Below, one piece after another: positions 18,013 to 43,920 of a DNA stretch of 64,000 bases. Origin of the DNA: Setoptus koraiensis (Eukaryota > Animalia > Arthropoda); NCBI GenBank assembly GCA_048013815.1, contig CM106585.1:11470001-11534000 (forward strand), given 5' to 3'. A model generated the notes under the pieces. It was given only the letters and a program-made list of their open reading frames with translations, made no database searches and had not been told where the DNA came from. Made by a program: the position numbers and the translations under genes. Numbering within the stretch: the stretch's first letter is position 1; each line of letters opens with the position of its first letter.

Positions 18013-18210
18013 TATTAAATGACATATTGTAAATATGACAATATATATAAACACAAATATATACACAGATATACATTTATGGACATCTTATTTAGGATAA
18101 CACGATCAAAAACTAGACCTGCCAAACTATCCAACCAAAAAGACAGAAATACTTCGGCCTAGGAACTTCTTGATAAGCTGACTGTAGATAAGCCTTTATT
18201 AATATCACTA

Positions 18211-20023: not shown

Positions 20024-20617
20024 ATGGAAAAACATTTGTTTAATCTCAAATTTGCAGCCAAAGAATTAGAGAGAAACTCAAAGAGGTGCAACAAACAGGA
20101 GAAGATCGAAAAGGACAAGGCGAAGAAATGTATTGCAAATGGTCAAATCGAAAACGCCAAGATACATGCTGAAAATGCGATCAGGCAGAAAAATCAGGCC
20201 ACAAATTACTTAAGAATGGCAGCCCGTATCGATGCTGTGGCCAGTCGTGTTCAGACTGCAGTCACAACTAAAAAAGTCACCACTTCGATGACAGGAGTCG
20301 TCAAGGCAATGGATTCCGCCATGAGCAGTTTAAATTTGGAGAAAATTTCTGGTGTTATGGATAAATTTGAGAAACAATTTGAAGATCTCGATGTACAATC
20401 ATCATACATGGAGAACACAATGAGTTCTACAACGACAGTATCGACACCCCAAGGTGAAGTTGACAATCTGATGCAACAGATAGCGGACGAGGCCGGACTA
20501 GAGCTTAATCTAGAACTGTCTCACGGGGTAAAGTCATCTGTGTTGCCCTCCGCAACTATTGTCTCTCAGGAACAGGATGAGCTCACCAAGAGATTGGAAC
20601 AACTGAGGAATGCCTAA
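20024..20617 (+). CDS. CHMP1B: ESCRT-III charged multivesicular body protein 1b (Did2/Vps46), intronless CDS, 197 aa
   Basis: MEKHLFNLKFAAKEL, IHAENAIRQKNQA, ARIDAVASRVQTAVT, MDKFEKQFEDLDVQ, ADEAGLELNLEL and the C-terminal MIM DELTKRLEQLR. Confidence 0.95.
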   Translation: MEKHLFNLKFAAKELERNSKRCNKQEKIEKDKAKKCIANGQIENAKIHAENAIRQKNQATNYLRMAARIDAVASRVQTAVTTKKVTTSMTGVVKAMDSAMSSLNLEKISGVMDKFEKQFEDLDVQSSYMENTMSSTTTVSTPQGEVDNLMQQIADEAGLELNLELSHGVKSSVLPSATIVSQEQDELTKRLEQLRNA

Positions 20618-21036
20618 TCACCTTACACATATGAATGAGTGAACACCGTGATGTAGTAATCCAATATGATTGCTAAATTCTGTTGTTTTATAGCTTATTA
20701 AAACGAAGAAAAAACAATAAATGTATAGCTTATCGTTGTTAGTTTACAACAGTGCAAACTTCTAGATCGGATGGTCAGCGCGGATGAAGTTGATATTTAT
20801 CGTTCATTGTAGCTATATGATGGTAAATTTGACCTTCAGCACCTCTGTTGTTTGTATCTGTCATATATTGTTGCGGATTATCTGAATATCTACTCGTCTT
20901 CGATCTAGGTGTAAACAGTTTGCTTTTCGTATGTAAGCCAAACAATTGACAAGTTTTCTTGATCAATCGTGCAATGGTGCTCATCGTTATCAGATACTCG
21001 TGGTCTCTATTCAGAGGCGCCCTCCAGAATTCAAGT

Positions 21037-23037
21037 TTATAATGCGAAGTGTAGGATCAATATAATGCCAGATATAATCCACCCTACCAGCTGCACAAGA
21101 GATTTGTGATGAAAGACAAAATACAAAGTCAGTCTGTTGTAGTGATGTGATCACTCGAAAATATTTCTTACATTTTTACCAACCATTGGCAAGTTTTCGA
21201 GTGTCACTGGATATCTAGCTGCGATTAAAAATGTGATATTCCGGACATCGTGTAGATCATCCCTTACATAAATCAGTCGCTCTACGTTCCAGGTAGTCAT
21301 GAACGGCTGATGAATTAGCAGATTCTGTATGGCATGATATATTTTTGTGAACTGACATTGAGAATAATACGAATGGGGGTTGATATTGGTTGAAAGATGA
21401 AGATGTTCAAGTTGCACCCAGGATCGAAGGATAAAGTTCAATAGGCTTAAAGCTTGTACCAACATACTGACCCTGCTATGGATAACACCAACAGTGAAGC
21501 TTATATACACAACAGGAAACGAAAAACCAAGAAAAAGAGAACTTAATGCTGGGAGTTCTGGATCTTTAAAGTCTGGCATTCTCATGATGGTGGCAACAGT
21601 CAACATGACACACGGCATCATGAAAATAAGTTCTAAATTTAGATAGTCGTTGAAATTTCGCTTTAATTGACCAAAATCGCCGCGCAACCCAGATATCATT
21701 CTTATAAGTTTCTCAACATGGTTGGATATCTCAATCGAATTCTCAGTTTTATTCCTTCTGATTAAAACACTGACTGAATTGAATTCTCGGTGAAACAAAT
21801 TTCTAGGATGATGGTTGAAAGTCTTGTCGTCCATGGCTGCCAGTATTTTCAGTCTATTTTTGTGAATTCTAGTTTGCTTACGATAGAGTTCATTCAATTC
21901 TCTGGCATATCTCAGTGTGCGCTTTGCTTTGCTAAAACAAACGAAACAATCCCAAATAAATGGTGTAATATCTAAAAATTGATGGAGTATTATATGATTC
22001 AAGATAACGCCAAGCAAAATAGAAATGAGGCGCTCTGTCGTGAATAATTTCTCGGAATCTTGATAGTTATACACCTTACTGGATATTAACATCGGGAAAA
22101 CAGCCACACCCAAGAGAAAAAATAGTGATAACCACCCTAAAACTATCCAATGAGCTAAAAATCTCATTGACGCTTTATCGACCATGTGAGGACTGCCATT
22201 TTTCAGAAAATGTTTGGGAAATTTAAGCTGATAATTGATCTCCCGAAAATCATCGTTGAAATCAAACAATATTTCATGCCTCGCGTTGCTCGAATTTCCG
22301 GATTTCGCCGATTTCGCACTGGCGTCACATACATCTATGTAGCTACTTCTAGATTTATGATAACCGAAATTAGCTTCGATGCGATTAAATGTGTCACTTT
22401 TCTTCTCTTGTGACATTTTAAACCCTCCAGATTTCGGCGTGACAACGTTGCAATTACAACTTTCTCTTTGTCTAGCTGTTCGTTCGCTCAACTTGTCCTT
22501 AGATTGGACTAAATTAGTGTAGCCCATGATATAGAGCCAGGCTCGTGGGGTTAATTTGAAACAATTGAAATAAGTCATAACTATATCATACTGTCTGGGG
22601 CGATAATTTGCACTCATACTTCTACGCAGATGTTTAACACGGAAAATGTAAGTTTCAATCAGAAGTATAGCTACAATTCTGTTCACCACCTGAGAGTATC
22701 TATAATTAACATATGGGTCGGTTATCAAATTCCATTTACGCAGTTCCTGAATAACACTCTCATCACAGAAGCCAATTACTAATGAATTGATCGCTATGTA
22801 GATTCCAAAAAGAAAATCAGATAGCATATAGAGCAAATAGTGTGGCTTTCGCTGTCTATTATTTAAGAAAATTTTTACTCTGCCGATTAATATACTCATC
22901 CTTCTGTGATTCCTCTTGTCGTCGAACTGTTCCGATGATATTTCTTGCACTTCATCGGGCAGCAAATTCACTGAACCATTGACAATTGAACAGGAGAAAA
23001 TCAGTGGAAAGAATATGTTAATTCTGATGGAATCCAT
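21037..23037 (-). CDS. Gustatory-receptor-like 7TM protein, copy 1; exons 23037-21472, 21351-21184, 21090-21037; 595 aa
   Basis: Two phase-0 GT-AG introns at positions shared by all paralogs. About 7 hydrophobic segments. The spliced C-terminus ITFLIAARYPVTLENLPM|LVGWIISGIILILHFAL fits the GR TM7 spacing (hFt..g.f.i....l..i...i.TYhhhhhQF). The family call rests on motif and topology only. Confidence 0.75.
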
Positions 23038-23370
23038 TTCGTGATTTGTTGTGGCAAAAAAATAGTTCTCTCTAAAATGCTGATGGGAGACGGGTTTAAA
23101 TATTTTAAACTTTAAGGTAGCATCATCTGAGACAAAATCGTATGCAACGTGTCTGTTCATTATTCACATTGCAGATCTTTTTCGATCATAAATCTCGATT
23201 GAATTTTTTTTTCTTGTCTTTTCAGGAAATTTGTTGCGAATATTCATTGTCCACCACGCATAGCCTAATAGCCAAGTAACATGTTATCTTTGTTTGATTA
23301 AGCGATCTAATGATCCAGACACCGGTCTAGAGCACGTCAACTCAACCGATTGACAATGTACCTTCTGACC

Positions 23371-24150
23371 TTAAGAGTGTACATAACGCACGAATTGAGT
23401 GCACAATGATAAAAATGGCAAAACTCCAAGGTCGATCAAAACTACGAGCTGATCGAGGTGGAAACTCAATGGTTTGAACCACATCCAGCCATTTGTGCTA
23501 TTCCTTCCATTTGGCAGAAGCGTTAGAAATGGTTTTGTACTCTGGCGAAAGACCGTGTGGTTCAAACCACGAGCATACGACCATGTAACAATTTCTATCG
23601 CCACACTGTAGAGGCGCCCTCCTAACTTCAAATTTATAATGATCAATATAGTGCCAGATATAATCCATCCAACCAGCTACACAAGAAATTCGTGATGATG
23701 ATGAAGACAAAATACAAAGTCAGTCTATTGAAGGGGCTGTGATCACTCGGAATTTTTTTTTTATATTTTTACCAACCATTGGCAAGTTTTCGAGTGTCAC
23801 TGGATATCTAGCTGCGATCAGAAATGCGGTATTCTGGACATCTCCTAGATCATCCGTTCCATCATCATCGCTGTACGTTCCAGGTAGTCATGAACGGCTG
23901 ATGAATTAGCAGACTCTGCAAGGCATGATATATTTTTGTGAACTAACATTTAGAATAATACGAATGGGGGTTGAAATCGGTTGAAAGATGCAGATGGTCA
24001 AGTTGCTCTGATTACAGATTCAACGGATGGCTTTGATAGGTTAAAAGCTTGTGCCAACATTCTGACCCTACGATGGATAACGCCAACAATGTAACTTATA
24101 TACACTATAGGGAGCCATTAACCGAGATAGAGCAAGCGAAGGGGTTGTCT
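23371..24150 (-). pseudogene. GR-like copy 2, 5'-truncated pseudogene
   Basis: Only the end of exon 1 (~24150-24067, TAC>TAA in LG*WLPIVYISY), exon 2 (23942-23777; 166 nt vs 168) and exon 3 (from 23676) remain. An 11-nt deletion in exon 3 removes the normal stop, and the frame reads on to 23371. Confidence 0.75.
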
Positions 24151-24492
24151 CATTTTAGGGTGTTTTTATTTTTGGTCTATCTTTCTTTTCCGGTGACAAA
24201 ACAATTCAATCTTTGGTATAGTAGAAACAAGTGTCTGTAAGAACTTGCATGAAATAGGCAAAAGCCGGATCGAATTTTAACTCACAAAAAGAGGATGTGC
24301 TTTAGTTCCATCACAGAGAAACAATTGCAAGTCCGGTCGATACCAAGAGAAAAAACAATGATCAATGGGATTGCTAAAAGTTTGCTTTCCGAATATAAAC
24401 CAAACAATCGCTTCTTGATCAATCGTGCAATGGTGCTCATCGTTATCAGATACTCGTGGTCTCTCTCCGAAAGCGCCCTCCTAAATTCAAAT

Positions 24493-25920
24493 TTATGATG
24501 CGAAATGTAGGATCAATATAATGCCAGATATAATCCATCCAACCAGCTACACAAGAGATTTGTGATGAAAGACAAAATACAAAGTCAGTCTGTTGTAGTG
24601 ATGTGATCACTCGGAAATATTTCTTACATTTTTACCAACCATTGGCAAGTTTTCGAGTGTCACTGGATATCTAGCTGCGATCAGAAATGCGGTGTTCTGG
24701 ACATCTCCTAGATCATCCGTTACAATCATCAATTGCTGTACGTTCCAGGGAGTCATGAACGACTGATGAATTAGCAGATTCTGTATAGCGTGATATATTT
24801 TTGTGAACTATGATTGAGAATCAAAAGAGCGAGGTTTGAAGTTTTCCGTAAGATGAACATTGTCAAGTTGCTTCGATTTCCGATTCAAAGGGTGATGTTC
24901 AATAGGTTTAAAGCTTGTGCAAGCATACTGACCTTGCTATGGATAACACCAACAGTGAAGCTTATATACACAACAGGAAACGAAAAACCAAGAAAAAGAG
25001 AACTTAATGCCGGAAATTCGGGTTCTTTAAAGCCTGGCATTCTCATGATGGTGGCAACAGTCAACATGACACAAGGCACCTTAAAGATAATTTCCAAATT
25101 AAGATAGTCGCTGAAGTTTCGCTTTAATTGACCAAAATCGTTGCGCAACTCGGTTACCATTTCTATAAGGGTATCAACATGGCCGGATATGTCAATCGAA
25201 TTCTCAGTTTTGTTCCTTAAGACTAAAGCATCGACTGGATAGTATCCGGAATGGAACAATATTCCAGCATGATAGTCGAAAGTCTTGTCGTCAACGGCGA
25301 CCAATATTTTCATTCCATTGTTGTAAATTCTAGTTTGCTTACGATAGAGTTCATTCAATTCTCTGGCGAATCCCAGTGTACACTTTGCTTTGCTAAAACA
25401 GACAAAACAATTTAGGATGAATGGTGCAACGTCTAGAAATAGAAAGATTGTTATAAGTATCGAGATAATGCCAAGAAAAAAAGAAACGAGGCGCTCTCTC
25501 ACGAATAGTATCATGGAATCTTGATATTTATAATAATCCGTCAATATCAATATAGGAAAAATTGCCACATCCGAGATATAAAATAGCGTTAACCACCCGA
25601 CAAACACCCAATGAGCTAAAAATCTCAGTGACGCTTTATCGACCATGTGAGGACTGCCTTTTATCAGAAAGTGTTTGGGAAATTTAAGCTGATAATTGAT
25701 CTCCCGAAAATCATCGTTGAAATCAAACAATATTTTTCCACGCTCCGCCCGTCCTGCGTTGTTCGAATTTCCGATCGTTTCCGCCTTGTTATCACACACA
25801 CCTCTATAGCTAGTCCCACCAATATACGGTCTTTCAGATTTATGGTAACCGAAATTACTTTCGGTGCGATTAAATATGTCGCTTTTCTTCTCTTGTGACA
25901 TCTCAAATCCTCCAGGTTTT
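24493..25920 (-). CDS. GR-like copy 3, 3' half (end of exon 1 to 24933; exon 2 24807-24640; exon 3 24546-24493)
   Basis: Intact frame homologous to copy 1, ending ...LPM|LVGWIISGIILILHFAS*. Homology stops abruptly at 25920, where poly-G/C noise begins. Confidence 0.8.
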
Positions 25921-28900
25921 GATCCTCGGGGGATCCCAAAATGTGTCACTAAATGGTCCCCCCGAATTCACCTGGTATATACTGAACACACACACCCAGA
26001 GGGTGCGGGGGGGAGGGGGGGGCGGGTGGGGGGGAGGGCGGTGGGGGAGGGGGGTAGGGGCGGGGGAGGCGGATGGGGGTCGGGGGGGGGGGTGGGGAGA
26101 CCATCGCACGTGAGGGGGGGGGGGGGGGGGGGGGCGTGATAATCGAGTCTGACCAATCTGCTACTACTTCACATACATGTCTTACGCAAGCTCTGTCTCG
26201 AATCAGTGGACGCACATGGTATATAAGCCAGGCATCGTGGAGAAGCTTAGATGCTTTATCAAATGTCAATCGAAATAATGTCATATTACATAATCAATAA
26301 CTGTCTGGGCCGATATTTGCTCACTACTTCTCTACAAACAGAATTATTTCTGACACGGAAAATGTAAGTTTCAAATCAGAAGTATATGCTGCGATTCTGT
26401 CCACCAGGGACGTTGAGAGCAGTATTTATTAATATAAACTGCAAGAAATGTCGTTCAGCATTATCATATTCTCATCTATCCAACATTACCTTCCTGCATC
26501 GTACACTCGCTCTCATTACAAAATCAATACTAAATGAAATTACATCCATCAGAATAAATTCAATGACAATCAACATAACTACTACTCCATGGCAACGAGC
26601 GACAAATAATTATGGTTTGTCGGTCTATATCCACGTGTAACTCGACAAAACAAACCTCTACTTACTACAGGCATTATAATATCATATCTTGTGGTTCCTC
26701 TTGTTAACTGTACTGTATCTCAGCACGACCTGAATCTATTCTTACTTGCAGTTCCACTTGCATACCAGGGGGCGAGGCAATCTTCACAAGTAGAACAACT
26801 GACCCAACTTGCACAGCCAGAAATGAAGCAGCGCAAAGAACTTTTCAACTCGGTATAACACATCCTGATTGTATCATACTCTTTCAGTAAAGGTGTGGTT
26901 GGTGCGATCATCGCCCACGTGTGCGCTTACTACCTATAGGATAGGAAATTGAAGACTAACAAGAGCCTAAACCACTATCGACTGTAACATACGGTCTAAA
27001 AGCACTTTAACGACTAACACTCACAAAAGAAGGCCCAATAATATTATATATGTGGTAGTCTGAACATAGCCCCACCCCCCCATCGCTCCCCCCAAGATAA
27101 TTTCCCACCCACCACACACACACCCACAACATTGACGCGTCGCACTAGGATTTCGTTGGCAGTCTTTCTCTCCCTATCTAGAGAAATCACGTGCCAACAT
27201 TTTGTAAGTGTTTTATCATATTAGATTTGCCGAAGAATTGTGCGCCTTATTTCCGTACCAACAGCCGACGACACAGTCTAATGAAGGCAACAGGTGAGCT
27301 AGCACGTCAATTTTTATTGATATTGTCAGTGATTTTTCAGGACCCAGAGCCTCGTCCGCGGCAGCAGCACCCAACGGTTTCCAACATTCTCAGCATGTTT
27401 CCTTTGGTTGAAGAAGTGATTCAGTCTCGGAACTACCACGATCAATTCTTATGATTATATATAAAGGCATATAGAAAGAGTAGCTCATCAACACAGTGGG
27501 CTACTTAGCAGGCTAGGCGGGGGCCGGTAGCCCGGGAAACGCCCTCTCGAGGAATTGCTCCAGCATCATGGCAGTAAGGCGACCTCATACGTCACGCAGC
27601 TTTCTTGGCGTCTAAATATAATCGCCTCATCCAAATATATCTCAAATAGTATATAGCGCTCTCCGTAATCTTAACGCTATATACGTAGGAATGATCATAC
27701 GACTCTATATACTAGCATACATGCTACAAAAACTATCTGCAAAGTCCATCACGCAGGCTTGGCTTCACACATGTATTGGATACACCAAGATAATATACAC
27801 TACTAAGAGAGGTGTGGCTATAACTCTCCCAACTCCTATCTCTAAGCTCAATACTCCTCTAGACCGATTCGGCAGGATACCCAAATTTCGTACTCGGCAC
27901 CGATACAAGAACCACATAATAAATTGCACTCTGACGCCTGAGCAGTTGTAAAGCCTCGGACAAAGTGAGGCAGAGTCACCTCTCGAGATTGAGCGGTCAG
28001 ATTAGGACATACACTCCGTAGAGCGCAAATATACTCAGTATCGCGAATAAATGCAACTAGCTTATATGGAAGGGAGGACATATTGTAGTATTTACAATGA
28101 TATAAGTTATATACAATTGAATGTTAGTGCTAGACGGTTCGTGGATATGCCTACCGTATTGTACTCCATCTGCCTACTTCCGCTACGTGTAACGTGTGAC
28201 CTATCAGAGAGTTTCTCCTCTTCTGCTATTTGGACCCAACGATAGCCAAATCGTTGGCTAAATGCTTTGCAGCTATGCACCACCCGTGACAAAGGCTACC
28301 AAGATCAGCGCGACAGTGATTATATATTGACGAGGTCGCATCCCCGCTTAAAGAGGCTTTCCAAGACATGGTTCTGATAGTTTGGCGTCGATTCCTCATA
28401 CATATTTATCAAGCCGAATTGTAGGCATCTAATCCATTCTATGTCAATATAATCACATACCAACTACTCTTGCGCAGCGAATTTAGTGAATGATAGACAC
28501 AAAGAGAGATGAGTAGTTCTATGATCCCGCAACGTGCTCAGTGAGAATTTCGGCTTTAATAAAGGGGATGCGGGGGTCTAAAACCATCACAGCTCATAAG
28601 ACACTGCTTTGTCTGAGCACTCGAGTAGCTCGTCAACTATAAGCGCAAACTCGGCAGATAGTCTCATGTGCATCCTTCCTAGATCATACGATTATACAAT
28701 TTCAGCCATTGCCATCGCTTCAGGTTCTCAATGAACGTCGTCGATGTTCCAGCAGATCTGTTAAGGCTTAGATAACATCAACAAGTACAAATCATTTTTA
28801 TTTATTGAGCTAGCAATAGATTCATTACAGGATGCAAGCGATTTAGACAAGTCCCAGGTATAGTCAGATGCAAGATGTTACAAGTGTGCTTCAGATTCTA

Positions 28901-31728
28901 CTACGCTTTAGAAACAGCGTAGAATAGGCTAATTCCTATAGGTTTAGTCCACAAGCTTGTAGCCAAGACATAAATACTGGAGAACCTTGCTATAGGTAAT
29001 CACCAACCAGTTGCTAACTATATTCTACATTACACTTACCCCACGGCGATGCCCAGTATTCGAAGAAAAGTAGACGACAACCACTAAATGCTCCAGCAAT
29101 GAATTCTTTACACAATCATCCCGCATCTCCTATATAACGATCAAACTAGCCAATGGCCTCATCATTGACCAACAGGTTCACATCTTGAACACACATAACA
29201 GGTCCCGAAATAAACTCAGTACGTTTACTTGACCATCATTTACGCTTCAAATCGTTCGAAATAACAGTTGCCGCAAACACCATGTTCACGCATCTATAGG
29301 ACTTCATGACATAGGTAAATAATGTACATCGAATCTGCACTAACAACATTTTATCCCTCAATCGTAACTTACAGCAGTAATTAACGAATCTCAGCGTCCA
29401 CACACTACTGAATTGTTTTCTGCATTTACCAACAGATGCCCAACTCAGTCATGTACAGACCTAAGATCCACTCTCTGGCAAGTCACTCGCTCTTACCACG
29501 CCTGCTTAGAAAACTTGATTAACCTACATCTACAACAATATCGTTAAACACTCTCCGAAAGCAAGACTACGTCAAAATCATGCATTATGATTCTTGTACT
29601 CGCAAATGATGTAGCACTCCACAGCCACGGCCATACTCGTTCAAGAGAATTTCTTCGTCAATCCACAATCACCCCACATCATATCTTCACTCATATCATG
29701 CTGGCCTGAATCTCCAGTTACTAGTACTAACGTCGACCGTGACATGGCCAAAAACGAAGTCTAGAAGTTCTATTAAGTAACGCCCGATTAGCGCACTCGG
29801 ATAGATCAACTAACGATTCGTTTCACATGTTTTTTCTGTATCGTATCGCCTTCGGGATGGGGAGGCAGGGGGGGGGGGGGCCATCGACACGGGTTGTAAT
29901 CTTTGGGGGGGGGGGGGGTCTGGTGGTCCATCTGTTGTTGAAGAGTGAATGACGTAGAGGAAATTTAGCTCTTGTCGGTTATCTCTGGAAACCGATATCG
30001 TCGCCAGTTTAGTAAGAGATAAGTCTATTTGAATCATAAGTCAAGTTGTAATAGACTAACTCGCGGAATACGTACCAAGTACTCGCAACTCGTCCCAACA
30101 ACGCAATGCACAACTATTTAACAGTCTTACCTAATGAAATCCTAACATCCATGAGCGCGTTACTCCTATTCCACGTCACGGAGGTGAAGCTTCTGACCCA
30201 TCTACACTGTCCGAGGCGCCTACCAAAATCATCACACTATTAAACGTAAATTGTCGGATAAACTGCAGCGCGCCACATAACTCACGGCACTGTTGCTCTC
30301 GATCAAATCATCGTTAAAGTGTATAGTCTGCTTATTTTAAGAGGGTGGGTACGTACGATACACAGAAGAGTTAAGGTAGTTCTGCGACATTCTCACTTGA
30401 TAATGCTCTGATGATCTTTTATTTGCCTGGCGATCGAATCCCTTATTCCGTTGGCTTCGTCGGCTGCGCGGTGGTACGCCGATTGGAAAAGCTAATCTCC
30501 TCTATTCGCCTTCGCGTGACCGTTCATTCTACTCGCCATAAACCCTCCGTCGTCGCATGTCGACAGTGTCTATGGATTGTGATATTATTGAAAAGGGGGG
30601 GGGGGGTGGTCGCGGTTGTGAGTTAGTTGTGGTGGGTGATTGGAGGTGGTTTAGGGTCAGATATGGATGGTGAGGGGTAAAACAGTTAATTATTCTTAAT
30701 ATTTATAATATTATTTGAAAAAATAAAATTTTTAATATAGTTGTGATATGTATGGAGGTTAAAGTTCGTTGTTAATATTAGTATCTTTACAGTTTGTATG
30801 ATTTGATAAGATGATCGTTGAGAATATTATTCTGATTTATTGAGTTTGTTGATGGTGTATATGTTAGAGGTTAGATGTTGGGTAAGTTGTAGTTGAGTGA
30901 AGAGTGGGTATTAGATATCACTATAACTAGAAATATAAGGATCAAGTCTGTGAGGGGGGGGAATTTTTGTTGAGAAGATTGACGGGTAATATTTAGGCTT
31001 GTGTGATTATGTCTTTGAGGATATTACGCTGATGTCCTAGTAGACTGAAGGGTCGTAAATAAGAGTTATGTTTAATCGTGTTCATATCTATATGTAAATA
31101 TGGTTGAGCATTTTTTCTGCACATATTCTAGCATTATGGACTGATGTGTATATTGGTTCAACAGAGGGGGAAGGTGTCATGGAGTTGGGGTTTGTAGAAG
31201 AGGATGATGTTGTGTGTTGATGCTGAGAGTGTGTTGAGGGGAGGTGTGGAGTTGGAGGGTGGGTTTGAAGAGAAGACAGATTTTTAGAACTTTCGAATAA
31301 TTCTTTATGCACATCACATCGACAGCAAATTCCTGAACCATTGACAATGTACAAATAATAATATTAAAGTGGAAAAAGAACCAACCTGTATCTGATCTAT
31401 TTACTCTCATTGTCATAAAGTAATGAATAACCTCTACAAAATTAATTTGGAGGACTGAAAAAGCTGATGACGATCCGGGTCCAAAATTCAAACACTTACA
31501 ACTTCGAAATGGAACATCTGAAGACGAAAATTCTAAAAACAACATCTTTTTGCATCTTTTTTCATCCCGCGCCGCTCCAATCATATTCCGACTGAGTGCG
31601 TCCTTTGACGGTGAAAGTTGTTTGGTCCTCTTTTTTTTCCGTGTCTTATTTGCACTTACATGGCTGAGTAACACGACCTATCTTATATTCTCTTCTAGTA
31701 TCTCTATCTGTTATATGGACAAACAAAT
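25921..31728. other. Error-rich redundant sequence, collinear with ~37,465-41,320 (probable unpolished long-read contig end)
   Basis: Recognisable blocks match in order with many insertions: 26.15-26.6k to 37.5-37.9k; 27.2-27.45k to 38.23-38.43k; 28.4-28.5k to 39.0-39.1k; 31.3-31.73k to 40.95-41.32k. It has long G/C homopolymers and no intact ORF. Confidence 0.85.
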
Positions 31729-32228
31729 NNNNNNNNNNNNNNNNNNNNNNNNNNNNNNNNNNNNNNNNNNNNNNNNNNNNNNNNNNNNNNNNNNNNNNNN
31801 NNNNNNNNNNNNNNNNNNNNNNNNNNNNNNNNNNNNNNNNNNNNNNNNNNNNNNNNNNNNNNNNNNNNNNNNNNNNNNNNNNNNNNNNNNNNNNNNNNNN
31901 NNNNNNNNNNNNNNNNNNNNNNNNNNNNNNNNNNNNNNNNNNNNNNNNNNNNNNNNNNNNNNNNNNNNNNNNNNNNNNNNNNNNNNNNNNNNNNNNNNNN
32001 NNNNNNNNNNNNNNNNNNNNNNNNNNNNNNNNNNNNNNNNNNNNNNNNNNNNNNNNNNNNNNNNNNNNNNNNNNNNNNNNNNNNNNNNNNNNNNNNNNNN
32101 NNNNNNNNNNNNNNNNNNNNNNNNNNNNNNNNNNNNNNNNNNNNNNNNNNNNNNNNNNNNNNNNNNNNNNNNNNNNNNNNNNNNNNNNNNNNNNNNNNNN
32201 NNNNNNNNNNNNNNNNNNNNNNNNNNNN
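31729..32228. other. Scaffold gap, 500 N
   Basis: Run of N read directly. Confidence 1.
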
Positions 32229-35200
32229 TATCATAAGGAAGAAAAACCTAATAAGAATCAATGGCGAAAAGGCTAACATCTCATAAATAAAAAATATAAG
32301 GAAATGAACGTCTTTGTGAGTTTCAATTCCCTTGTGAGAGTATATTTTATTCTTGCCCCGAGTATACTTAATTATCGCTTATACTATCAATAAGCTGGCA
32401 AAGTGGGACTGTAATCAGAAAACACAATCTAGGTCGATATTAAGTTATAGTCTGGAGAGACGATTAAATCCTAAGGAAATTCCGATTGACAGTATTACTA
32501 AAACCATGTTTAGGATGCACCTCTTAAAAGTCATCCGGTGGACAGAGTATTGCGCATCCGATTGCGATCATTTGACGCAAACACAATTTCTAAGGAACCC
32601 TTTCTTAATATTGGATCTTATATCTATAGTTGAACTGCGTCAGGCATGACAAGGGCAAACCCGTATGGAAGGATATGCCTGATTTGAAACACTTAGGATG
32701 GCTACATTAGGAGATAGACTTTTTGTGCGGCGGTGCGCGTACGGGATACAAAGTGAATATGTTTAATTTAGGTGCGCTCAGTGTTGGCCGGGGTGAATGT
32801 GTGGGACTCGGTCACGGGGGGGTTATTGGGGATTTAAGTGTGTCTCGATAAAGCACTATTAACAGATAATAGTTGCATCGTGTTAATTGAGGTGATAGGG
32901 ACTTCAACTTGTTCTATAACACTACCAATTTCGTATGATCCCAAGATAGTCTCATAAAAAATTTATCAATGCCTTACGAAATTTTCTGCGGATTACTTCG
33001 TCGTATCCTACTGAGATACCTGGCAAAAGTTGAGAGAGACAAGTGATGGTTTGTTATTCGGGTTGTGCGCAGTAAGATGGGCCTGTTGGCTATTGTGGTG
33101 GTGAGCAATGTGTTAGGTGTGTGCCACTGGGTATCGAGAGGTTTTATCAGGGACGTGGGCGGAGGTTTCTTATGGTTTGTTTAGACTCTTGTTGGTGGAT
33201 AATATTCACTGCTAGTTCGACTTTAAACTTCTTGTGACGAGCGGGGGGCTTTCATCAATATACCCTTGGCCTGGTTAGTTGGGACAGAGATATTTTGGAT
33301 TAATATTGATTCCTTAAAGTTGTAGCATTTAGACAATCTAGAACGTCAACAACGTCGAACCACACGTCGTTACGACCGTCGAGGGAAGATCGGAAAGTCG
33401 CAAGATCTAGCATGGTCTGAAAAGAGTTCAAACTAGGAAATAACGGGGATATAGCGTTTGGGGCTACAATCACGAAATGTTTTAGCGCGGAATTGGTAAT
33501 CCCAGCTAGACCAAGTAGAAATTCGGATGAAATGCACACTTACAGAATTTAGAGTATGGACTGATTTGTCCAGCAGCAGGTGTAGAAATTTAGGTTTGGC
33601 CCATTGTGTTTTATATAGGATCATGATGGTAGTTCATTTAAGTAGCGAGGTAATTAAAAAGGCACGCCAAATGGTGTGTCTCCCGTGTAACTGGATTGTT
33701 TACTCTAGGCTCATGTCTTGTGTCAGTTTAACCAATAATGATCAGCTATGAACAATTTATTGTTCTTCTTGTCGCCAAACGAATTTGCTTGCCAGCTCCC
33801 TATTGACAGTACGAGTTTAATGGCATCCCCCTCTTGTGGTATGTTTAGCAAATTTCGATTGTCGTTTTTCAGATCTTTGCTTGCGAGTTCTTGGAAATCA
33901 CCTCTTTTACTAAAAACTAAACTTTACTAAAAAACTGATATATTTTGACGAAGAAAAGAGTAGAGGCCAACCTTGTTGGAAACATTCCCACGCAGAAATA
34001 AGCTAGCCGTGTATTCCATCCACCGTGAAGTTTTCTATCTTTAAAATTCATTAGGAATTGATTCCGTGAGGTCGAGCACACCTCTTCAACACCAAAGGGA
34101 GAAACATCCTCGTATTGTTGGAATCGGGTATGATAGTGCCAGCGACCGTGGCCTGGAGTCAGTTAAAATACACTATTTCAGATAAGAATCGACCGTGCTT
34201 ACTTTGACCATCAAGTCCGCGGCGTGGTGGACGGGAATTTGACTGACATACTTGAGGACAGGGCTTATGTTTAATGAAAAATAATTTTTACAATGGAGAT
34301 GTATATGAATTTTGCTAGATGATCGGCTTTGTTACAGCTGCTAGTTGTATCGTCGGGGTTTCCATTTTTTGTGGGGAGGGAGGGGGGGGGGGGTGATTTA
34401 TGGGGGTATTGTTTGAGTTGATTACGTTTAAGGGAGATTGAATGGGGATTGCAAAAGAATCGAACGCTGAGACTGTTTGGGGTTCAGACACAAACAAACT
34501 TACGAACTATGGATTACATTCAAGTTTTAGAAAATAGTCTTTCCTACTCATTTTCATGATGTCTCATATTCTGGTCAAAGTGGTTCACGTGAAATTTGAT
34601 TGCCCGAACTGAAGTGCAAACGAAAATTATCTCGGAACAGTTCGATAACAAGAGGAAACCACACAACACAAGAATGAAATACTATTAATGGGCAGAGTAG
34701 AGGTTTTCTTAAAGTACAGTAATAGCCACGACAAAAACCCATATTATTTTACGCATCATATAATTATTTGCATAATTTCTTTTTAGGGAATTGACCTGCC
34801 CGATCAATTCTCTTGCTCATATTGGTTTTTGGTAATGAGCCCCGAGTGTCCATCAGGAAAATGACCGGAGATGGAATTTGATAACGGAATACCATTATGG
34901 ATATGTATATTTTAAAGCTCATATACTGTTACAGCAAATAGCAGAATTTTATTCGGTTTGTATACTGTTACATGTTTCCGTGGCAATTTCTGTGTAGACT
35001 GTATGAGATCAATATTTAATTCGCCCAAGAAAACTGTATGATATTATTTTGAACAATTTTTTCCGATCGGTCACCCGAGCTAGATACTCGTGTACTGTAA
35101 TATACAACCCTTCTGCGTCTCCATCTACATCCCTGGAATATACCCCCTAATCCGACGCCATGGCGCTATGATCACTGGGCTACATGATACGGTCCAGATC

Positions 35201-37260
35201 TTAAGACATGATTGAGTAGACAGGAATTGCATACAGATACTCACCAGCCAAAAACCATGGAAGGAATTTGAAGATCAGTCAAACAGAGAAAAAAAACAAA
35301 AGCGACATATTTATTGCACCGACAAGTAATTTCGGTTACATAAAATTGAAAGACCGGATATTGGTCGCTATGGGACTAGCCTATATGAAGGATGTCGGTG
35401 TTGAGTTACATAACAAGGCGGTAATTACGAGTTGGAGAGCGTAATTCCGAATACTTTCGCAGGTACGGGCCCGGAGCGGGGGGATTTATTGGAGGGGTGT
35501 GATGTAAATCAGAGGACATTTTCGGAGATGCTGCTTGGTGATGAGGTATATTTTGAGAAACTTTTAATAGGGAGGATTAAAGGCAGTCCTAACAAATAGG
35601 GATAGATATTGAGTATCTGAGTGATTTAGAGATCAGTGGGCTGTTGGGCAGGAGTGGGGGCATTTTTTCAGCTTGTTTGTGTGCTAAGGTTGGGTTTACA
35701 GGCATTGGGAGGAAGTGTGGGTGTGGGTAGGTGGTGTGCTTTAGATCAAGAATGCCATGATAAGTGAAGAGGGTGTAGGTGTGCAGCTGAGGCGGGGTGC
35801 GAGGAGGAATGGGATCGAGTGGAGTTATAGCGGGAGTTGTGATAGACGCTTTGACACCATCTTCGTAAATCTGGGTTGAGTCTGTTCTAGCCATGACATA
35901 CAAGTGTACCACTGGGATCGCCAGAGAATTGGATGAACTATATCGGCAAAGCAAACGAGAATTTACAACAAAGGAATGAAAAATATTGGTCGCCGTTGAC
36001 GACAAGACTTTCGACCATCATGGGGGAATATTGTCTCCTTCCGGCATACAACATCCAGTCGATGCCTTTAGTCGTATGCGAACAAAATGAGAATTCGCAT
36101 TGACTAATCGCGGCCATAGTTTGATACCCTTTTAGAAATGGTTACCGAGTTGCCGAACGATTCTCTGGTCGATTAAAGAGATACTTCAAACGACTATCGG
36201 ATTTGGGGTTTGGTGAACCGAGGTTGGCGGCAGGGGGGACTGGGGGTATCTGGCTACTGTGGGTGTCATAGTGAGGATCAGTTGGCAATCCGCCTGACAG
36301 CTGTGTTAGTTTGTTGTATTGAAGACGTGAACTTGAGTTATACATTATAGTGAATAAAGGAATCATGACACTAAGATAAGGGTATCCATCTTAAGTATAT
36401 TTCCAAATTAAAGATAGTCGTTGTATTACGTTTTCGCTTTTACACCTTTTTAATTGACCCATAATACGTTATCTTTTGTAAGCGCATCTCGGTGATTCCT
36501 TGGGTATTGAAATAGGGTATCAACATGGCCAGCGATAAGTCCCCAATCGAAATCTACAAAGTTTCTCGTTTTCCCTTAACGACTAACCAAGCACAAGCAA
36601 TCGACTGGTTTGGTATCGGTATTTTGGATACCAATAATTTCCAGCATGATTGATGCTAGTCGAAACGAAATCTCGAAAAGTTTCCTTGTCAGAAGTCAAA
36701 CGGCCGATAACAAAGAGTTTTAAATGCCTTTTGTTATAAATTGTAGTTGTGATTCGTAATTGTGTTACTGGCTATTCTAATGGCGAATCCCAAGTTGTAC
36801 ACTTTGCTTATTGCTAAAACAGACAAAAAATTAGGATGAATTGGTCTTGCAACGTCTAGAAATAGAAAGATTGTTATAAGGATCGGCCGATCTAACTGCC
36901 CCAAGGGAAAAGGAGGAAGAAAAAAAAAATAGGGCGGAGAAAAATATATAAAGAGTATAACGTGGACCGAAGGAGAGCTCACGTATTCTGTTGTGATGGG
37001 ACTGTTGACGGGTGTGGGGTGGTTTATGCCTGTCATTATCAAATATAGCGAAAGGAATATTGCCACACCGAAGTTATTAAATAGACGTTATAACCACCCG
37101 TTAACAAAACACCAAATGAGCTCGTAATATACGTCGGTGGAAGAGACGGGCGGTTTCGACCATGGTGTGGTGGGGTCATGCCTTTTTTCAGTGATAATGT
37201 GGCTGCGGGGGTTTGGGGTTGTGGTGTTTGGTGGTATCCAAGTTTTCTGTACAATCGTAT
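32229..37260. other. Error-rich fold-back sequence (inverted copy of ~39,920->37,261 continuing into 25,716->25,100, then turning around near 36.2-36.4 kb)
   Basis: 32.23k matches the reverse complement (RC) of 39.82-39.92k; 33.7-34.1k matches RC of 38.38-38.72k; 34.6-35.45k is the plus-strand copy-3 N-terminus; 35.85-36.2k matches RC of 25.1-25.4k; 36.4-37.1k matches 25.1-25.6k in forward orientation. Confidence 0.85.
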
Positions 37261-38042
37261 TTGAAATCAAACAATATTTTTCCACGCTCCGCCCGTCCTG
37301 CGTTGTTCGAATTTCCGATCGTTTCCGCCTTGTTATCACACACACCTCTATAGCTAGTCCCACCAATATACGGTCTTTCAGATTTATGGTAACCGAAATT
37401 ACTTTCGGTGCGATTAAATATGTCGCTTTTCTTCTCTTGTGACATCTCAAATCCTCCAGGTTTTGGCGTGATATCGTTGCAATTCTGTCTACTCAACATG
37501 TCTTTAGATCTGACCGAATCAGTGTAGCCCATGATATAGAGCCAGGCTCGTGGGGTTAGTTTCAAACAATCGAAATAAGTCATAATTATATCATACTGTC
37601 TGGGGCGATAATTTGTGCTCATACTTCTACACAGATATTTGACACGGAAAATGTAAGTTTCAATCAGAAGTATAGCTGCGATTCTGTTCAGTAGTTGAGA
37701 GTATTTATAATATACAAATGTGTCCGTTATCAAATTCCATTTCCGCATTTCCTGGATGACACTCTCATTACAAAAACCAATAACTAATGAATTAATCGCA
37801 AGGTAAATTCCAAAAAGAAAATCAAATATTATATAGAGCAAATAATATGGTTTTTGTCGTCTATTACTTAAGAAAAACTCTACTCTGCCCATTAATATAT
37901 TCATTCTTGTGTGGTTCCTCTTGTTATCGAACTGTTCCGATGATATTTCTTGCACTTCATCGGGCAGCAAATTCACTGAACAATTGACAAATGAACAGCA
38001 GAAAATGAGAGGAAAGAATATTCTATATCTGATTGTATCCAT
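37261..38042 (-). CDS. GR-like copy 3, 5' half (ATG 38042)
   Basis: MDTIRYRIFFPLIF... is homologous to the paralog N-termini. 37261-37464 is identical to 25717-25920. Confidence 0.8.
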
Positions 38043-39012
38043 TTCGTAGTTTGTTGTGTCGAAAAATTAGTTCGCTCTTAATTAGTGATAGAAACAGGCT
38101 TCGAATTATATCTTAAACTTTAAGATCACCACACCGAACAAAAAATTATTTGTGTTAAACGACATCTTCGTGCACTGTTTCTATGGCAGATCTTCTTCAA
38201 TCAGAGATCTCAATTGTAAGTTTTTTCTTAGATTTGCCGGAAGATTGTTGCGCTTATTTCCCGTCCACCACGCACGTCTTGATGGCAAAGTAGCACGTCA
38301 TTTTTATCTGAATTAGTGATTTACTGACCCAGGCCTCGGTCCGCGGCACATCAAACCGATTCCAACATTTCAGGATGTTTCCTTTGGTTTGAAGAGTGTG
38401 CTCGACTCACGGAATCAATTCCTAATGAATAAAATAGAAAAACTTCACGGTGGATGAACACTGCGAGCTGATTTCTCGGGGGTATTCCAGCAAGGTTGGC
38501 CTCTACTCGTTTTCTTCGTCAAATATATCAAATTTTTAGTAAAGTTTAGTTTTAGTAAACAAGTGATTCCAAGAACTCGCAAGCAAAACTGAAAAACACA
38601 ATCGAATTCTAACATACACAACAGGGGGATGCCATTACTCTACGTCAATAAGGAGCGGCAGCAAATTCGGTTGGCACGAAGAAAGAACAATAATTGCATA
38701 GCTTATCATTGTAAGCTGACAAAAGTGCAAGAGTCTAGATCGGGTGATCAGCGTGAATGTTAGTCGCTAATTATGGTTCATCATAGCCATCTAATGGGCA
38801 ACATGACCCTGACCAAATCAGTCGATAACATAATGCTGTTGGATTGTCATCAATGTCTACTTGTCTACGTTGTAATGGCAGAGAGTTTTCTTTTCGGATG
38901 TAGACCAAACGTTTGCCACGTTTTCCTTATTGATCTCGCTCAAGCAGATCAGGCGACTTTCCGATCCCTCGAAGGGCGTTCGAATTGGTTCGAAGTTGGT
39001 CGAAGTTCAGAT

Positions 39013-41040
39013 TTATAAAGCGAATTGTAGGATCAATATTATGCCAGATATAATCCATCCAACTAACTGCGCAGGGGATTTGTGATGAAAGACCAAAGAG
39101 AGAATTAGTTTGTCGTAGTGATGTGATGATTTGAATATATTTCTTACATTTTTACTAACCATCGGCAAGTTTTCGAGAGTCACTGGATATCTATATGCGA
39201 TCAAAAATGTGATATTCTGGACATCTTCTAGATCATCCGTTACATTCATCAATTGCTGCACGTTCCAGGGACTCATGAACGACTGATGAACCAGCAGATT
39301 CTGTAAGGCATGATATATTTTTATGAACTAGCATTGGATCATAAGAATGAGGGTTGAAATTGGTTGACAGATGCAGATGTTCAAGTTGCTTCGATTTCTG
39401 ATTTAAGAGGTGAGGTTCTATAGGTTTAAAGCTTGTACCAACATACTGACCCTGCTATGGATAACACCAACAGTGCAACTTATATACATTATAGGGAGCC
39501 AGTAACCGAGAAAAAGAAGACAAATTGCTCGCAATTGTAATTCTTCCAAATCTGGCATTCTCATGACGGTTGCAATGGTCATCATGACGCAGGGCATCTT
39601 GAATATAAGTTCCAAATTAAGATAGTCGTTGAAATTTTGCTTCAAATGATCGAAATCGTTGCGCAACTCTGTCACCATTCTTATGAGGGCATCAACATGG
39701 TTAAATATGTCAATCGAATTCTTAGTTTTATCCCTCCAGATTAACGTATCGACTAGATTGTGTTTCTGATACAGTCCACTTCCAGCATGATAGTTGCAAA
39801 TTTTGTTTTCAGTGGCTAGAAGAATTTTCATCTCATAGTTGTAACTCTCAACGTCGTTCATCATTATATTTTTTGTATGAATGTTAGCCTTCGCAATGAT
39901 TCTAGTAGTTTTCTTATGATAAATTTCACTCAATTCTCTGGCGAATCCCAGTATGTATCTTGCCTTGCTTAAACAAGAAAAACAATTAAGGATGAATGAT
40001 GTAACGTCGAAGAATTGATAGAGAAATATGAAAATCGAGAAAAGGCCGAGGCTAAAAGAAATGAGGCGCTCTTTGAGGAATAGTTCCATGGAATCTTGGC
40101 AGTTATGATACGCAAACGAAATCGCACTCGGAATAATAACCCAATCCACATACATTACTAATGGAAATCCTGCAATAATCCAATTAGCTAAAAATCTCAT
40201 TCCTGCCCCATCAACCACCCTGTGAGGCCCACCAGAAATGACAAGTTGTTTGGGAAATTTCAGTTGATAATTGATCTCCCGAAAATCATCGTTGAAATCA
40301 AACAATACATCGCCTGAATTTACGAACTTCTCCGATTCTGCTCGATCAAACATAACTAAGTGACTTCGCGCTGCTTTGGCGCGATGAAATGTTTCTTTCT
40401 CCTTCTCGTTTGACATCCCATACCCCGTAGATGTTGGCAGGATATAATTCGAGTTAAAACTGTCCTGTCGTCTAGATTTCCGTCTGTTCCACCTTTTGCC
40501 TTTAGATTGGACTGAATCAGTGTAGCCCATGATATGAAGCCATGCTCTTGTAGTTAATTTGAAACAATCGAAATAAGTCATAATTATATCATACTGTGTG
40601 GGGCGATAATTTGTACTAATGCTTCTTCGCAGATGTTTGACACGGAAAAAGTACGTTTCAATCAAAAGTATCGCCGCAATCTTGTGTAGCAGGCGAGAAT
40701 GTCTATAGTGAGTAAATGTGTCCGTTATCAAATTCCATTTTCCTATATTCTGGATGACACCTTCGTTACAAAAACCATATACGAATGAATTAAACCATAA
40801 GTAGATTCCAAGAAGAAAATCAACTAGCATATAGAGCAAATAATATGGTTTTTGTTGTTTATTATTTAAGAGTATCTTTACTCTGCCTATTAACATGTTC
40901 ATCATTGAGTGGTTCTTCTTATTTTCGAACTGTTCTGATGATATTGCTTGCACCTCATCGGACAGCAAATTCACTGATCCATTGACGAATGTACAAGAGA
41001 AAATTAGTGGAAAGAACAACCTGTATCTGATCGTATCCAT
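39013..41040 (-). CDS. GR-like copy 4; exons 41040-39451, 39327-39160, 39066-39013; 603 aa
   Basis: Same intron positions as the other copies (AGG|gtcagt...ctag|TTC; ATG|gttagt...gcag|TTA). C-terminus LVGWIISGIILILQFAL carries the GR-type QF. Confidence 0.8.
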
Positions 41041-41890
41041 TTCATAGTTTGTTACATCTAAAAATTAATTGGGACTGAAATGCTGATACGATCCGGGTCA
41101 AAATTCTAACACTTTCAACTTCGAAATGGCAACATCTGAGACGAAATCCAAAACAACATCTTTTTGCATTTTTTCCATCGCGGCTCCTCCATTCAGATCT
41201 CGCTTGTTGGCTTTGACGGGAAGTTGTTTGGTCCTCTTTTTTCTTGTCTACTTTTAATAGCTGAGTAACACGCTATCTTTATTCTCTCTAGTATCTAGTC
41301 TGGTTATATGGACAAAAATCGTACCCCGGGAAGGGACGGTAATGCGATAATGTGATGGTGAAGCGGGTTGGTACCATGTAACAAATAGTTCTTAAAATAA
41401 TGCTTTCAGTGATACCGAGTTTATTAGAAATCCTATTCAGAACCTCAATGAGGAGAATACAAAAGTGTACCCTTTATAATAATAGAAAATTGGAACACAC
41501 AGATTTTACAATTTGTTGCTTCCGGCAGCCAGAATTTGCATGCATTCTCAGCTTGACCGGCGTGCCCGTGCCCTCGAAAAACGCCCATGGAACAAGCACC
41601 GATGATTGGCACCCGCTCACCATTTAAGGATGTTTCTGCCTCTGATTTGAAGAGTGTGCTCGGCTCACGAAATCAGTGCATAATGAATAAAGTACTACAA
41701 CTGTAAAACTTCACGGTGTATGATCACTACGAGATGGTTGAGGGTATTTCAGCAAGGTGGCCTCTCTTCTTTTACTGCGACAAATAATTCCAATGGTTAT
41801 TGCAGTATTAATAGACATTAATACTGTAATACTTGATTTCTTGCCACCAATATGGAACGGTTCCGGCTAACAAATTCAGATTTTTAATTT

Positions 41891-43920
41891 TTACAGTAAG
41901 GAAGCGAACTGTAGGATCAATATTATGCCAGATATAATCCATCCAACCAGCTGCGCAGAGGATTTTTGATGAAAGACCAAAGAGAGAATTAGTTTGTCGT
42001 AGTGATGTGATGATTTGAATATATTTCTTACATTTTTACCAACCATTGGCAAGTTTCCGAGAGTCACCGGATATCTATGTGCGATCAAAAATGTGATATT
42101 CCGGACATCTTCCAGATCATCCGTTACATTCATCAATTGCTGCACGTTCCGAGGAGTCATGAACGACTGATGAACTAGCAGATTCTGCAAAGCATGATAT
42201 ATTTTTGTGAACTAATATTCAGAATCATAAGAACGAGGTTTAAAATTCGTTGAAAGATGAAGAAGTTGCTTTGATTTCTGATTTAAAAGATGAGGTTCAA
42301 TAGGTTTGAAGCTTGTGCAAACATACTGACCCTGCTATGGATAACACCAACAGTGTAGCTTATATATACTATTGGACACCACCAACCAGCACAAAGCATA
42401 CTTATTGCTTGAAATTGAGATTTATCCAAGTCTGGAATTCTCAGGAGGGTAGCAACAGTCAACATGACACAGGGCATCTTGAAGATAAGTTCCAAATTCA
42501 GATAGTCGTTGTAATTTTGCCTTAACCGATCGAAATCGTTGCGCAACTCTGTTACCATTCTTATGAGGGTATCAACATGGTTAGATATGACAATTGAATT
42601 CGTAGTTTTGTCCCTCCAGATTAACGTATCGACTGCATTGTGTTTCTGATACAGTCCACTTCCAGCATGATAGTTGCAAATTTTGTTATCAGTGGCTAGA
42701 AGAATTTTCATCTCATAGTTGTAACTCTCAACGTCGTTCATCATTATATTTTTTGTATGAATGTTAGCCTTCGCAATGATTCTAGTAGTTTTCTTGTGAT
42801 AAATTTCACTCAATTCTCTGGCGAATCTCAGTATGTATCTTGCCTTGCTTAAACAAGAAAAACAATTAAAGATGAATGATGCAATGTCCAAGAATTGATA
42901 GAGACATATTACAATTGAGAGAATGCCAAGGATAAAAGAAATGAGTCCCTCTTTGAGGAATCGTTCCATGGAACCTTGATAGTTATGATACGTCAACGAT
43001 ATTTCAATCGGAATAACAACCCAATCCACATACATTACTAATGAAAATCCTACAACCATCCAATTAGCTAAAAATCTCATTCCTGCCCCATCAACCACCC
43101 TGTGAGGCCCACCATAAATGAAAAGTTGTTTGGGAAATTTCAGTTGATAATTGATCTCCCGAAAATCATCGTTGAAATCAAACAATACATCGCTTGAATT
43201 TACGAACTTCTCCGATTCTGCTCGATCACTCATATCTAAGTAGCTTTGCGCTGTTTTGCCACGATGAAATGTTTCTTTCTTCTCCTCATGTGACATTCCA
43301 TACCCCGTAGATGTTGGCAGGATATAATTTGAGTTACAACTCTTCTGTTGTCTAGATTTCCGTCTGTTCCACCTTTTGTCTTTAGATTGGACTGAATCAG
43401 TGTAGCCCATGATATGAAGCCATGCTCTTGTAGTTAATTTGAAACAATCGAAATAAGTCGTAATTATATCATAATGTGTGGGACGATAATTTGTACTAAT
43501 GCTTCTTCGCAGATGTTTGACACGGAAAAAGTACGTTTCAGTCAAAAGTATAGCTGCGATTCTGTGTAGCAAGCGAGAATATCTATAGTGAGTAAATGTG
43601 TCCGTTATCAAATTCCATTTTCCTATTTTCTGGATGACACCTTCGTTACAGAAACCATATACGAATGAATTAAACAATAAGTAGATTCCAAGAAGAAAAT
43701 CTAATAGCATATAGAGCAAATAGTATGGTTTTTGCTGTCTGTTGTTTAAGAAAATCTTTACTCTGCCCATTAATGTACTCATCATTGTGCGGTTCCTCTC
43801 GTTGTCGAGCTGTTCTGATGATATTGCTTGCACTTCATCGGACAGCAAATTCACTGATCCATTGACGAAAGTACAGGCGGAAATCATTGGAAAGAATATG
43901 TTGTATCTGATTGTATCCAT
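41891..43920 (-). CDS. GR-like copy 5; exons 43920-42331, 42211-42044, 41950-41891; 605 aa
   Basis: Closest paralog of copy 4, with the same exon lengths (1590/168). C-terminus LVGWIISGIILILQFASLL. Confidence 0.8.

Follow-up and report, generated by a model that had tools for sequence, protein, structure and literature searches.

A tandem gene array of the mite Setoptus koraiensis represents a large, oversized membrane protein family with the predicted fold of insect odorant and gustatory receptors

Does a tandem array of divergent membrane protein genes in the mite Setoptus koraiensis encode channels akin to gustatory receptors (GRs), as proposed in an earlier note on this DNA? The array occupies positions 21037-43920 of the window, i.e. 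the whole stretch of 64,000 nucleotides that was analysed (genome G000, scaffold C1, 11470001-11534000; positions given without a scaffold refer to the window). The assembly comprises 48.76 Mb in two scaffolds, C1 and C2, and was built with Flye from PacBio continuous long reads, for which over 100,000 wild mites had been pooled (heterozygosity 1.13%), followed by 3D-DNA scaffolding (PMC11920263). The earlier note had placed the genes in the superfamily of seven-transmembrane ion channels (7TMICs) to which the GRs and the insect odorant receptors (ORs) belong. Based on our findings we consider it probable that the genes are real and protein-coding and that they belong to a large, mite-lineage family with the 7TMIC fold of insect ORs and GRs, whose members are likely chemosensory cation channels. 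The most fitting classification is as a GR-like (Grl-type) 7TMIC family that occurs in mites of the eriophyoid lineage and may descend from GRs. Thus, the superfamily assignment holds as far as the fold is concerned, but not for GR membership by sequence, as there is neither a match to the 7tm_7 profile nor profile similarity to the weak GR candidates of this genome.

The window contains four long open reading frames (ORFs) on the minus strand and several shorter ones, all paralogous, and the genes A, B, C and D are built to a common plan, i.e. a long exon 1 followed by two short 3' exons (Table 1). Exon 1 closes with ..IHS(R/K), and a GT comes directly after it. Both introns, with lengths of 119-125 nt for intron 1 and 93 nt for intron 2, are phase 0 and bounded by GT..AG, exon 2 encodes 56 residues (F(T/I)KIYHA...ENLPM), and the last exon contributes 17-19 residues, LVGWIISGIILIL(Q/H)FA... 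The main evidence for these splice models is conservation, since at least 20 further loci of the genome share the peptide of exon 2, the GT/AG sites and, in the last exon, the motif GW..SG.....Q(F/Y), with introns ranging from 85 to 360 nt; the exon structure with two 3' introns, as originally described, thus recurs well beyond the window. Once spliced, gene A yields 595 aa (522 + 56 + 17), gene C 603 aa and gene D 605 aa, and the array bounds are exact, position 21037 being the last base of the stop codon of gene A and position 43920 the first base of the ATG of gene D. Of the four paralogs thought to be reconstructable (595, 595, 603 and 605 aa), A, C and D are intact, whereas B is present in two pieces. 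The pseudogene reported with them is real and corresponds to a 3'-end copy. Read in frame, the 93-nt intron 2 is free of stops in C and D, whereas it contains a stop in A and B. Intron 2 of C (39067-39159) and that of D (41951-42043) are 97% identical, which exceeds the conservation of the flanking exons, and if retained this intron would add 31 residues between the two parts of the seventh transmembrane helix (TM7a and TM7b) while leaving the frame intact.

The late phase-0 intron that had been taken as a GR-like trait is intron 2, which is found in all window genes. It sits 6 codons before the SG of the C-terminal motif in all four of them and in at least 20 other loci, although its position cannot be aligned directly with that of the Gr intron. 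The motif itself shows the reported change of the TY of TYhhhhhQF to SG. It reads SGIILILQF in C and D and SGIILILHF in A and B, i.e. the suggested ending SG-h5-QF is found in C and D, but in A and B His replaces Gln. Among the 25 family loci for which exon 3 was found, 24 have SG and one has TG, and the Gln is present in 22. In the corresponding motif of BmGr9, 436-TYLVILIQF-444, a ring of hydroxyl groups in the ion path is supplied by Thr, the Tyr is in contact with pore-penetrating lipids, a hydrophobic gate is located in the middle of the motif, and Gln and Phe gate the extracellular mouth (PMC11100771). The window proteins have the same nine-residue spacing at the extreme C-terminus, with Ser instead of Thr, Gly instead of Tyr and Leu at the mid position, the motif being closed by Gln-Phe in C and D and by His-Phe in A and B. 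Variant TM7 motifs are also accepted in some Drosophila Grs (PMC9998090). The family thus appears to share two GR-type features, namely a phase-0 intron in front of the putative TM7b exon and a motif of identical spacing in which three of the four key positions are conserved.

The genes of the window are part of a much larger family. At least 40 near-full-length exon-1 loci, some of them with stops, are distributed in tandem arrays over both scaffolds, and family members are 30-40% identical to each other. Pairwise ratios of nonsynonymous to synonymous substitution rates (dN/dS) range from 0.42 to 0.59 for exon 1 and from 0.20 to 0.69 for exon 2, which points to relaxed purifying selection, as in chemoreceptor families. 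A word search retrieved eight unnamed Logan proteins with 30-40% identity, and a profile made from an alignment of 31 exon-1 sequences (A1) gave 34 hits among 1.84 billion protein representatives. The Logan protein P0001 is nearest to genes D, C and A with an identity of 42-43% and, therefore, originates from another species, in which the subfamily of the window has a counterpart. Four distant relatives among these profile hits, from Logan, JGI and ENA contigs (P0018, P0020, P0022 and P0023; 693-810 aa) have the whole protein in one ORF. The exon-1 profile aligns with these single-ORF relatives over 460 columns covering TM1-TM6 (hhalign probability 99.4, E 2.7e-21), and P0022 directly matches one family locus of this genome (E 4.4e-11). 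The C-terminus of the four proteins, ..FxxxGNFSLxxGSLxxxxGW(V/I)(A/S)T(S/G)xxLxxR, is without Gln-Phe. They form an intron-less sister group of the family with the 7TMIC fold and have no orthologue in this genome; a 675-aa ORF at C1:14.486 Mb was considered as an intron-less family member and rejected, as it still stops at the exon-1 donor. No description of the family was found in a literature search.

The fold was modelled for exon 1 of gene C using alignment A1. The model has a mean predicted local distance difference test score (pLDDT) of 65.8, with helices at 70-90, and a predicted template modelling score (pTM) of 0.62. It contains six long helices, including 344-392, 441-494 and 500-529, whereas the loops 181-243 and 380-442 are disordered, and according to this model exon 1 encodes an N-terminal re-entrant helix and TM1-TM6. 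In an exhaustive comparison with 48,161 PDB representatives by VIA-align, the top eight chains are all insect OR, Orco or GR chains, i.e. (with the two VIA-align values for each chain) 7lic_A (MhOR5; 14.8, 267), 8z9a_A (ApOR5; 14.3, 296), 8v02_D (AaegOR10; 14.2, 275), 8z9z_D (Orco; 13.5, 246), 8v3d_D (AgamOR28; 13.4, 288), 8jm9_A (Gr43a; 12.9, 281), 8vc1_A (BmGr9; 12.7, 282) and 8jme_A (Gr64a; 11.5, 280). Foldseek, which the earlier note had suggested for a comparison with Orco and Gr structures, gave no match with the exon-1 model, but with the model of the homologous P0022 (40-sequence alignment, pLDDT 74.5, pTM 0.77) the top 23 matches are all OR, Orco or GR chains with probabilities of 0.97-1.00 and a best E of 1.5e-3; the next, unrelated chains have probabilities of at most 0.16. 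In addition, the last helix of P0022 is split (642-661 and 669-692), and a division of TM7 into TM7a and TM7b is a hallmark of 7TMICs (PMC9998090). In the window genes exon 2 would correspondingly form the end of TM6 and TM7a, and exon 3, with its 17-19 residues, would form the pore helix TM7b. Taken together, these models support a 7TMIC fold for the family.

The predicted topology agrees with this fold. The net charge (K+R minus D+E, 31 sequences) is +3.5 for the N-terminus, +3.8 for the TM2-TM3 loop and +2.9 for the TM4-TM5 loop, as compared to +0.2, -0.4 and -1.0 for the remaining three loops. This excess of positive charges argues for an N-in, C-out topology with long intracellular loops and, thus, for the intracellular N-terminus that had been expected. 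The enlargement of the cytoplasmic TM2-TM3 and TM4-TM5 loops is likewise seen in the model, their mean lengths being 139 and 111 residues, respectively, versus 24, 6 and 7 residues for the loops outside. TM4 and TM5 carry long cytoplasmic extensions in the exon-1 model, and the long helix postulated before TM5 is represented by the 54-residue helix 441-494. The best conserved block of the family is located in the TM2-TM3 loop and reads TY..L.LTPRAW...G.TD, then LFDFDDDFREINYQLKFPK..L..GSPH..D.

The location of this block raises the possibility that the proteins have the 7TMIC fold without being chemoreceptors, i.e. that they are intracellular or housekeeping membrane proteins, as suggested for 7TMICs of the PHTF type, and have their main function in the conserved cytoplasmic loop. 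In favour of this explanation, the most conserved part of the family is neither the pocket nor the pore, and in PHTF proteins, which are candidate 7TMICs, the first intracellular loop exceeds 300 residues (PMC9998090). Nevertheless, we regard it as rather unlikely, since PHTF proteins are conserved and low in copy number, whereas the family described here has its many loci in tandem arrays, pseudogenes and low identity between members. Moreover, dN/dS values of 0.4-0.6 fit a pattern typical of chemoreceptor repertoires, and the members and relatives that were scanned are all without a PHTF Pfam domain.

Several results weigh against our preferred interpretation, most of them coming from sequence comparisons. 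The 7tm_7 profile, against which the earlier note had proposed to check the genes, gave no match at or above its cut-off on any tested exon. In Pfam there is no match for exon 1 of A, C or D or for either piece of B, no relevant match for exon 2 or for the open frame of exon 2, intron 2 and exon 3 in C and D, and no family for 19 of the 34 profile-search hits, nearly all distant ones included. Sequence profile searches of the PDB with alignments A1 and A2 gave nothing relevant, OR and GR chains being absent. The only 7tm_7-like loci of the genome are two ORFs with 23-24 bits as compared to a cut-off of 26.6, and alignment of the family profile with them by hhalign is not significant (E 0.2 and 0.49), nor do the full-length relatives align with this GR pair (E 0.26). 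Regarding the C-terminus, the Tyr of TYhhhhhQF is never present in the copies examined, although a hydroxyl residue, the motif spacing and Q-F persist, and A and B have a His in the position of the gating Gln. Finally, the seventh helix of the window genes is deduced from the hydrophobic exon 3 and from the P0022 model, their own model covering exon 1. Judged by its sequence the family is an orphan that fails every sequence-based GR test. In the ESM Atlas mostly unnamed arthropod clusters were found, and one DUF3537 "gustatory receptor" cluster at 0.90 is a weak lead only.

The two weak 7tm_7 candidates fit the two GRs reported for Aculops lycopersici (PMC7738191), and a word search from one of them retrieved a single unnamed homologue. 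Both lie in exceptionally long ORFs (L038, C2:8509530-8513141, 680 aa; L039, C1:17960826-17964326, 651 aa) that terminate in ..IITFSVM(F/I)I.. motifs. Judging from these two loci, even the canonical GRs of this mite appear to be oversized and divergent.

The lack of sequence similarity to any OR or GR would also be expected if the fold match was convergent or a modelling artefact and the genes encoded an unrelated lineage-specific multi-pass membrane protein. The blank Foldseek result for the exon-1 model, the shallow alignment of 31 sequences and the mean pLDDT of 65.8 point in the same direction; the exclusive recovery of OR, Orco and GR chains at the top of the VIA-align comparison and with P0022 stands on the other side, and we consider this explanation very improbable.

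The most apt description of gene B is a pair of fragments that come either from one gene which was intact until recently or from two genes which are nearly identical. Its pieces are 11.5 kb apart, with the assembly gap falling in the interval, and share an overlap of 213 bp (37253-37465 and 25709-25921) with 98.6% identity and 3 mismatches. If joined via this overlap, a hypothetical B would be in frame and comprise 522 + 56 + 17 = 595 aa. B cannot be called intact, however, because the overlap mismatches at three sites and because both pieces continue differently: the 3' piece runs upstream into non-family sequence that is identical in all three assembly copies of this region (see below), and the 5' piece runs downstream into single-copy DNA that holds old, partly inverted family fragments with 74-82% identity. 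That B is reconstructable is thus a hypothesis on assembly or haplotype. The idea that the 11.5-kb interval is merely false sequence was rejected, as in all three copies its left part runs on from the B 3' piece without a break, and its right part is single-copy and contains the old family fragments. Directly next to the point where the B 3' piece breaks off lies a satellite-like stretch of about 130 bp (26000-26140). Many partial copies of this stretch with 70-83% identity are present, several of them in tandem arrays elsewhere in the genome (e.g. at C1:19.82 Mb and C2:21.61 Mb), and on the minus strand the stretch encodes a proline-rich ORF (25949-26284).

The B 3' piece is, together with a transposon, a CHMP1 gene, gene A and the pseudogene fragment, part of a 14.3-kb stretch of which the assembly contains three copies, all of them terminated by a 500-N gap. 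The other copies are located at C2:11901021-11915338 and C2:14982620-14996942. The three copies are 99.8-100% identical and differ by substitutions in 26 columns and by indels in 8, none of which lies at or beyond 24634, so that positions 24634-31728 are identical in all of them, and the three places are unrelated to one another left of 17406 and right of the gaps; 32229-37252 is single-copy. The start of the stretch coincides with the TA and the terminal inverted repeat of the pogo-like transposon, the terminal repeat CAGT(A/G)AAGTTCAGCCAAATGCG being found at 17408 on the plus strand and at 19751 on the minus strand. The three copies may represent a recent real triplication, a composite transposon or a repeat appended by the assembler. 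There is no reading frame across the gap because the family fragments flanking it are oppositely oriented, which is a further reason not to call B intact. The transposon is a pogo/Tigger-type DNA transposon of 2.37 kb that has TA target sites and 22-bp terminal inverted repeats differing at one position; on the minus strand it contains an open ORF for a DDE_1 transposase of 487 aa (18211-19674). In the whole genome it is found as a full copy only three times, each time at the head of one copy of the triplicated stretch.

That the array consists mostly of decaying pseudogenes or is an assembly artefact, and not a working gene set, we find hardly credible: the 3'-only pseudogene, the split gene B, the several inverted fragments of the region, the position of gene A and the B 3' piece within the triplicated stretch and a stop that interrupts gene A in one of its two other copies speak for it, but the frames of A, C and D are open throughout, their splice sites are intact and their dN/dS values lie below 1, and C and D are in single-copy sequence. 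The array would rather evolve by birth and death, with three intact genes left among several fragments.

Table 1. Features of the array and its surroundings (window positions)
Feature	Position	Strand	Description
Importin-beta gene	12145-14931	+	Left neighbour of the array
Proteasome AAA ATPase gene	15840-16586	-	Left neighbour of the array
Pogo-type DDE_1 transposon	17406-19774		Left neighbour of the array
14.3-kb stretch	17406-31728		Three assembly copies, each ending at a 500-N gap
CHMP1/Did2 (Snf7 family) gene	20024-20617	+	Intron-less; between transposon and gene A, within the triplicated stretch
Gene A exon 3	21037-21090	-	LVGWIISGIILILHFAL + stop; putative TM7b; 17 aa
Gene A exon 2	21184-21351	-	56 aa; predicted TM6 extension and TM7a region; AG acceptor, GT donor, phase 0; peptide conserved in the family
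Gene A exon 1	21472-23037	-	522 aa; N-terminus to predicted TM6; ORF with conserved MDSI start; donor HSR/GT
Pseudogene fragment	23610-24135	-	End of exon 1, exon 2 with stops and frameshift, truncated exon 3
Gene B 3' piece	24493-25964	-	Exon 1 from about residue 200 (24933-25964), exon 2 (24640-24807), exon 3 (24493-24546); ends SGIILILHFAS
Stub	31317-31723	-	Like upstream region (promoter) and first 85 nt of gene C, 79%; abuts the gap on the left
Scaffold gap	31729-32228		500 N; crossed by no gene model
Inverted exon-1 fragment	32239-32695	+	70% to 39538-39915; abuts the gap on the right
Old inverted family fragments	33704-36198	+	Match parts of B at 74-82% identity; to the right of the gap, in single-copy DNA
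Gene B 5' piece	37245-38042	-	Residues 1 to about 266
Gene C exon 3	39013-39066	-	LVGWIISGIILILQFAL + stop
Gene C exon 2	39160-39327	-	56 aa
Gene C exon 1	39451-41040	-	530 aa; sequence used for folding
Gene D exon 3	41891-41950	-	LVGWIISGIILILQFASLL + stop
Gene D exon 2	42044-42211	-	56 aa
Gene D exon 1	42331-43920	-	530 aa

If the genes of the array indeed encode 7TMICs with a chemosensory role, the proteins would most likely form tetrameric cation channels that are gated by ligands and operate in chemosensory neurons. Their pore would lack the lipid-contacting Tyr, with Ser keeping the hydroxyl group, Gly in the place of Tyr and Gln-Phe being kept in C and D. We propose such channels because the spacing and the residues of the motif parallel those of BmGr9. 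The role in host-plant or pheromone sensing suggested in the earlier note may apply to them.

Eriophyoids are crop pests and virus vectors, and receptors involved in host finding are therefore of practical interest. The only eriophyoid chemoreceptor census found in our literature search, that of A. lycopersici, lists two GRs, which was taken to show that chemosensation had been lost to an extreme degree in connection with miniaturisation and host specialisation (PMC7738191). If the family of S. koraiensis comprises at least 40 working 7TMIC channels, this conclusion stems from sequence-only searching and would need revision, and such mites probably have many more chemical sensors than the published counts suggest. 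More tentatively, we speculate that eriophyoids have kept their chemoreceptors, i.e. that an oversized GR-derived channel family, invisible to sequence searches and characterised by a conserved cytoplasmic TM2-TM3 domain and a pore motif without Tyr, might have replaced the canonical GRs as main chemosensory repertoire of the smallest arthropods, with at least 40 genes or about 1% of a total of about 6,000 genes. A family of working channels would also provide a natural variant of the GR pore motif, with Gly for the lipid-contacting Tyr and, in some copies, His for the gating Gln, and would reveal how the first intracellular loop accommodates or exploits a cytoplasmic insert that is both large and conserved.

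Insect GRs have about 350-450 aa, whereas the members of this family have about 600 aa. No sequence similarity to insect GRs (BmGr9, DmGr43a, DmGr64a; Pfam 7tm_7, PF08395) is detectable, and the family differs from them in its TM2-TM3 loop of about 139 residues with an invariant acidic/aromatic block and in the Gly that replaces the motif Tyr in every copy examined. ORs branched off from the GRs in insects only and are not expected in mites; there is no sequence similarity to insect ORs or Orco (MhOR5, AaegOR10, AgamOR28, ApOR5-Orco). With PHTF, Class-B 7TMIC candidates of eukaryotes, the family has in common the 7TMIC fold and a first intracellular loop that is greatly enlarged, but PHTF proteins are conserved across eukaryotes as low-copy proteins with Pfam domains of their own, which are absent here, whereas this family is multi-copy and fast-evolving and has 3' introns and a C-terminal motif of the GR type. 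The Drosophila Grls (Grl36a, Grl43a; Benton and Himmel 2023, PMC9998090) resemble it in that both groups are recognised by structure and not by sequence, keep a phase-0 intron before the TM7 exon, have a variant TM7 motif and are taxon-restricted (PMC9998090). The Drosophila Grls are, however, few and of ordinary length, whereas the family described here is oversized and comprises at least 40 loci in an acariform mite.

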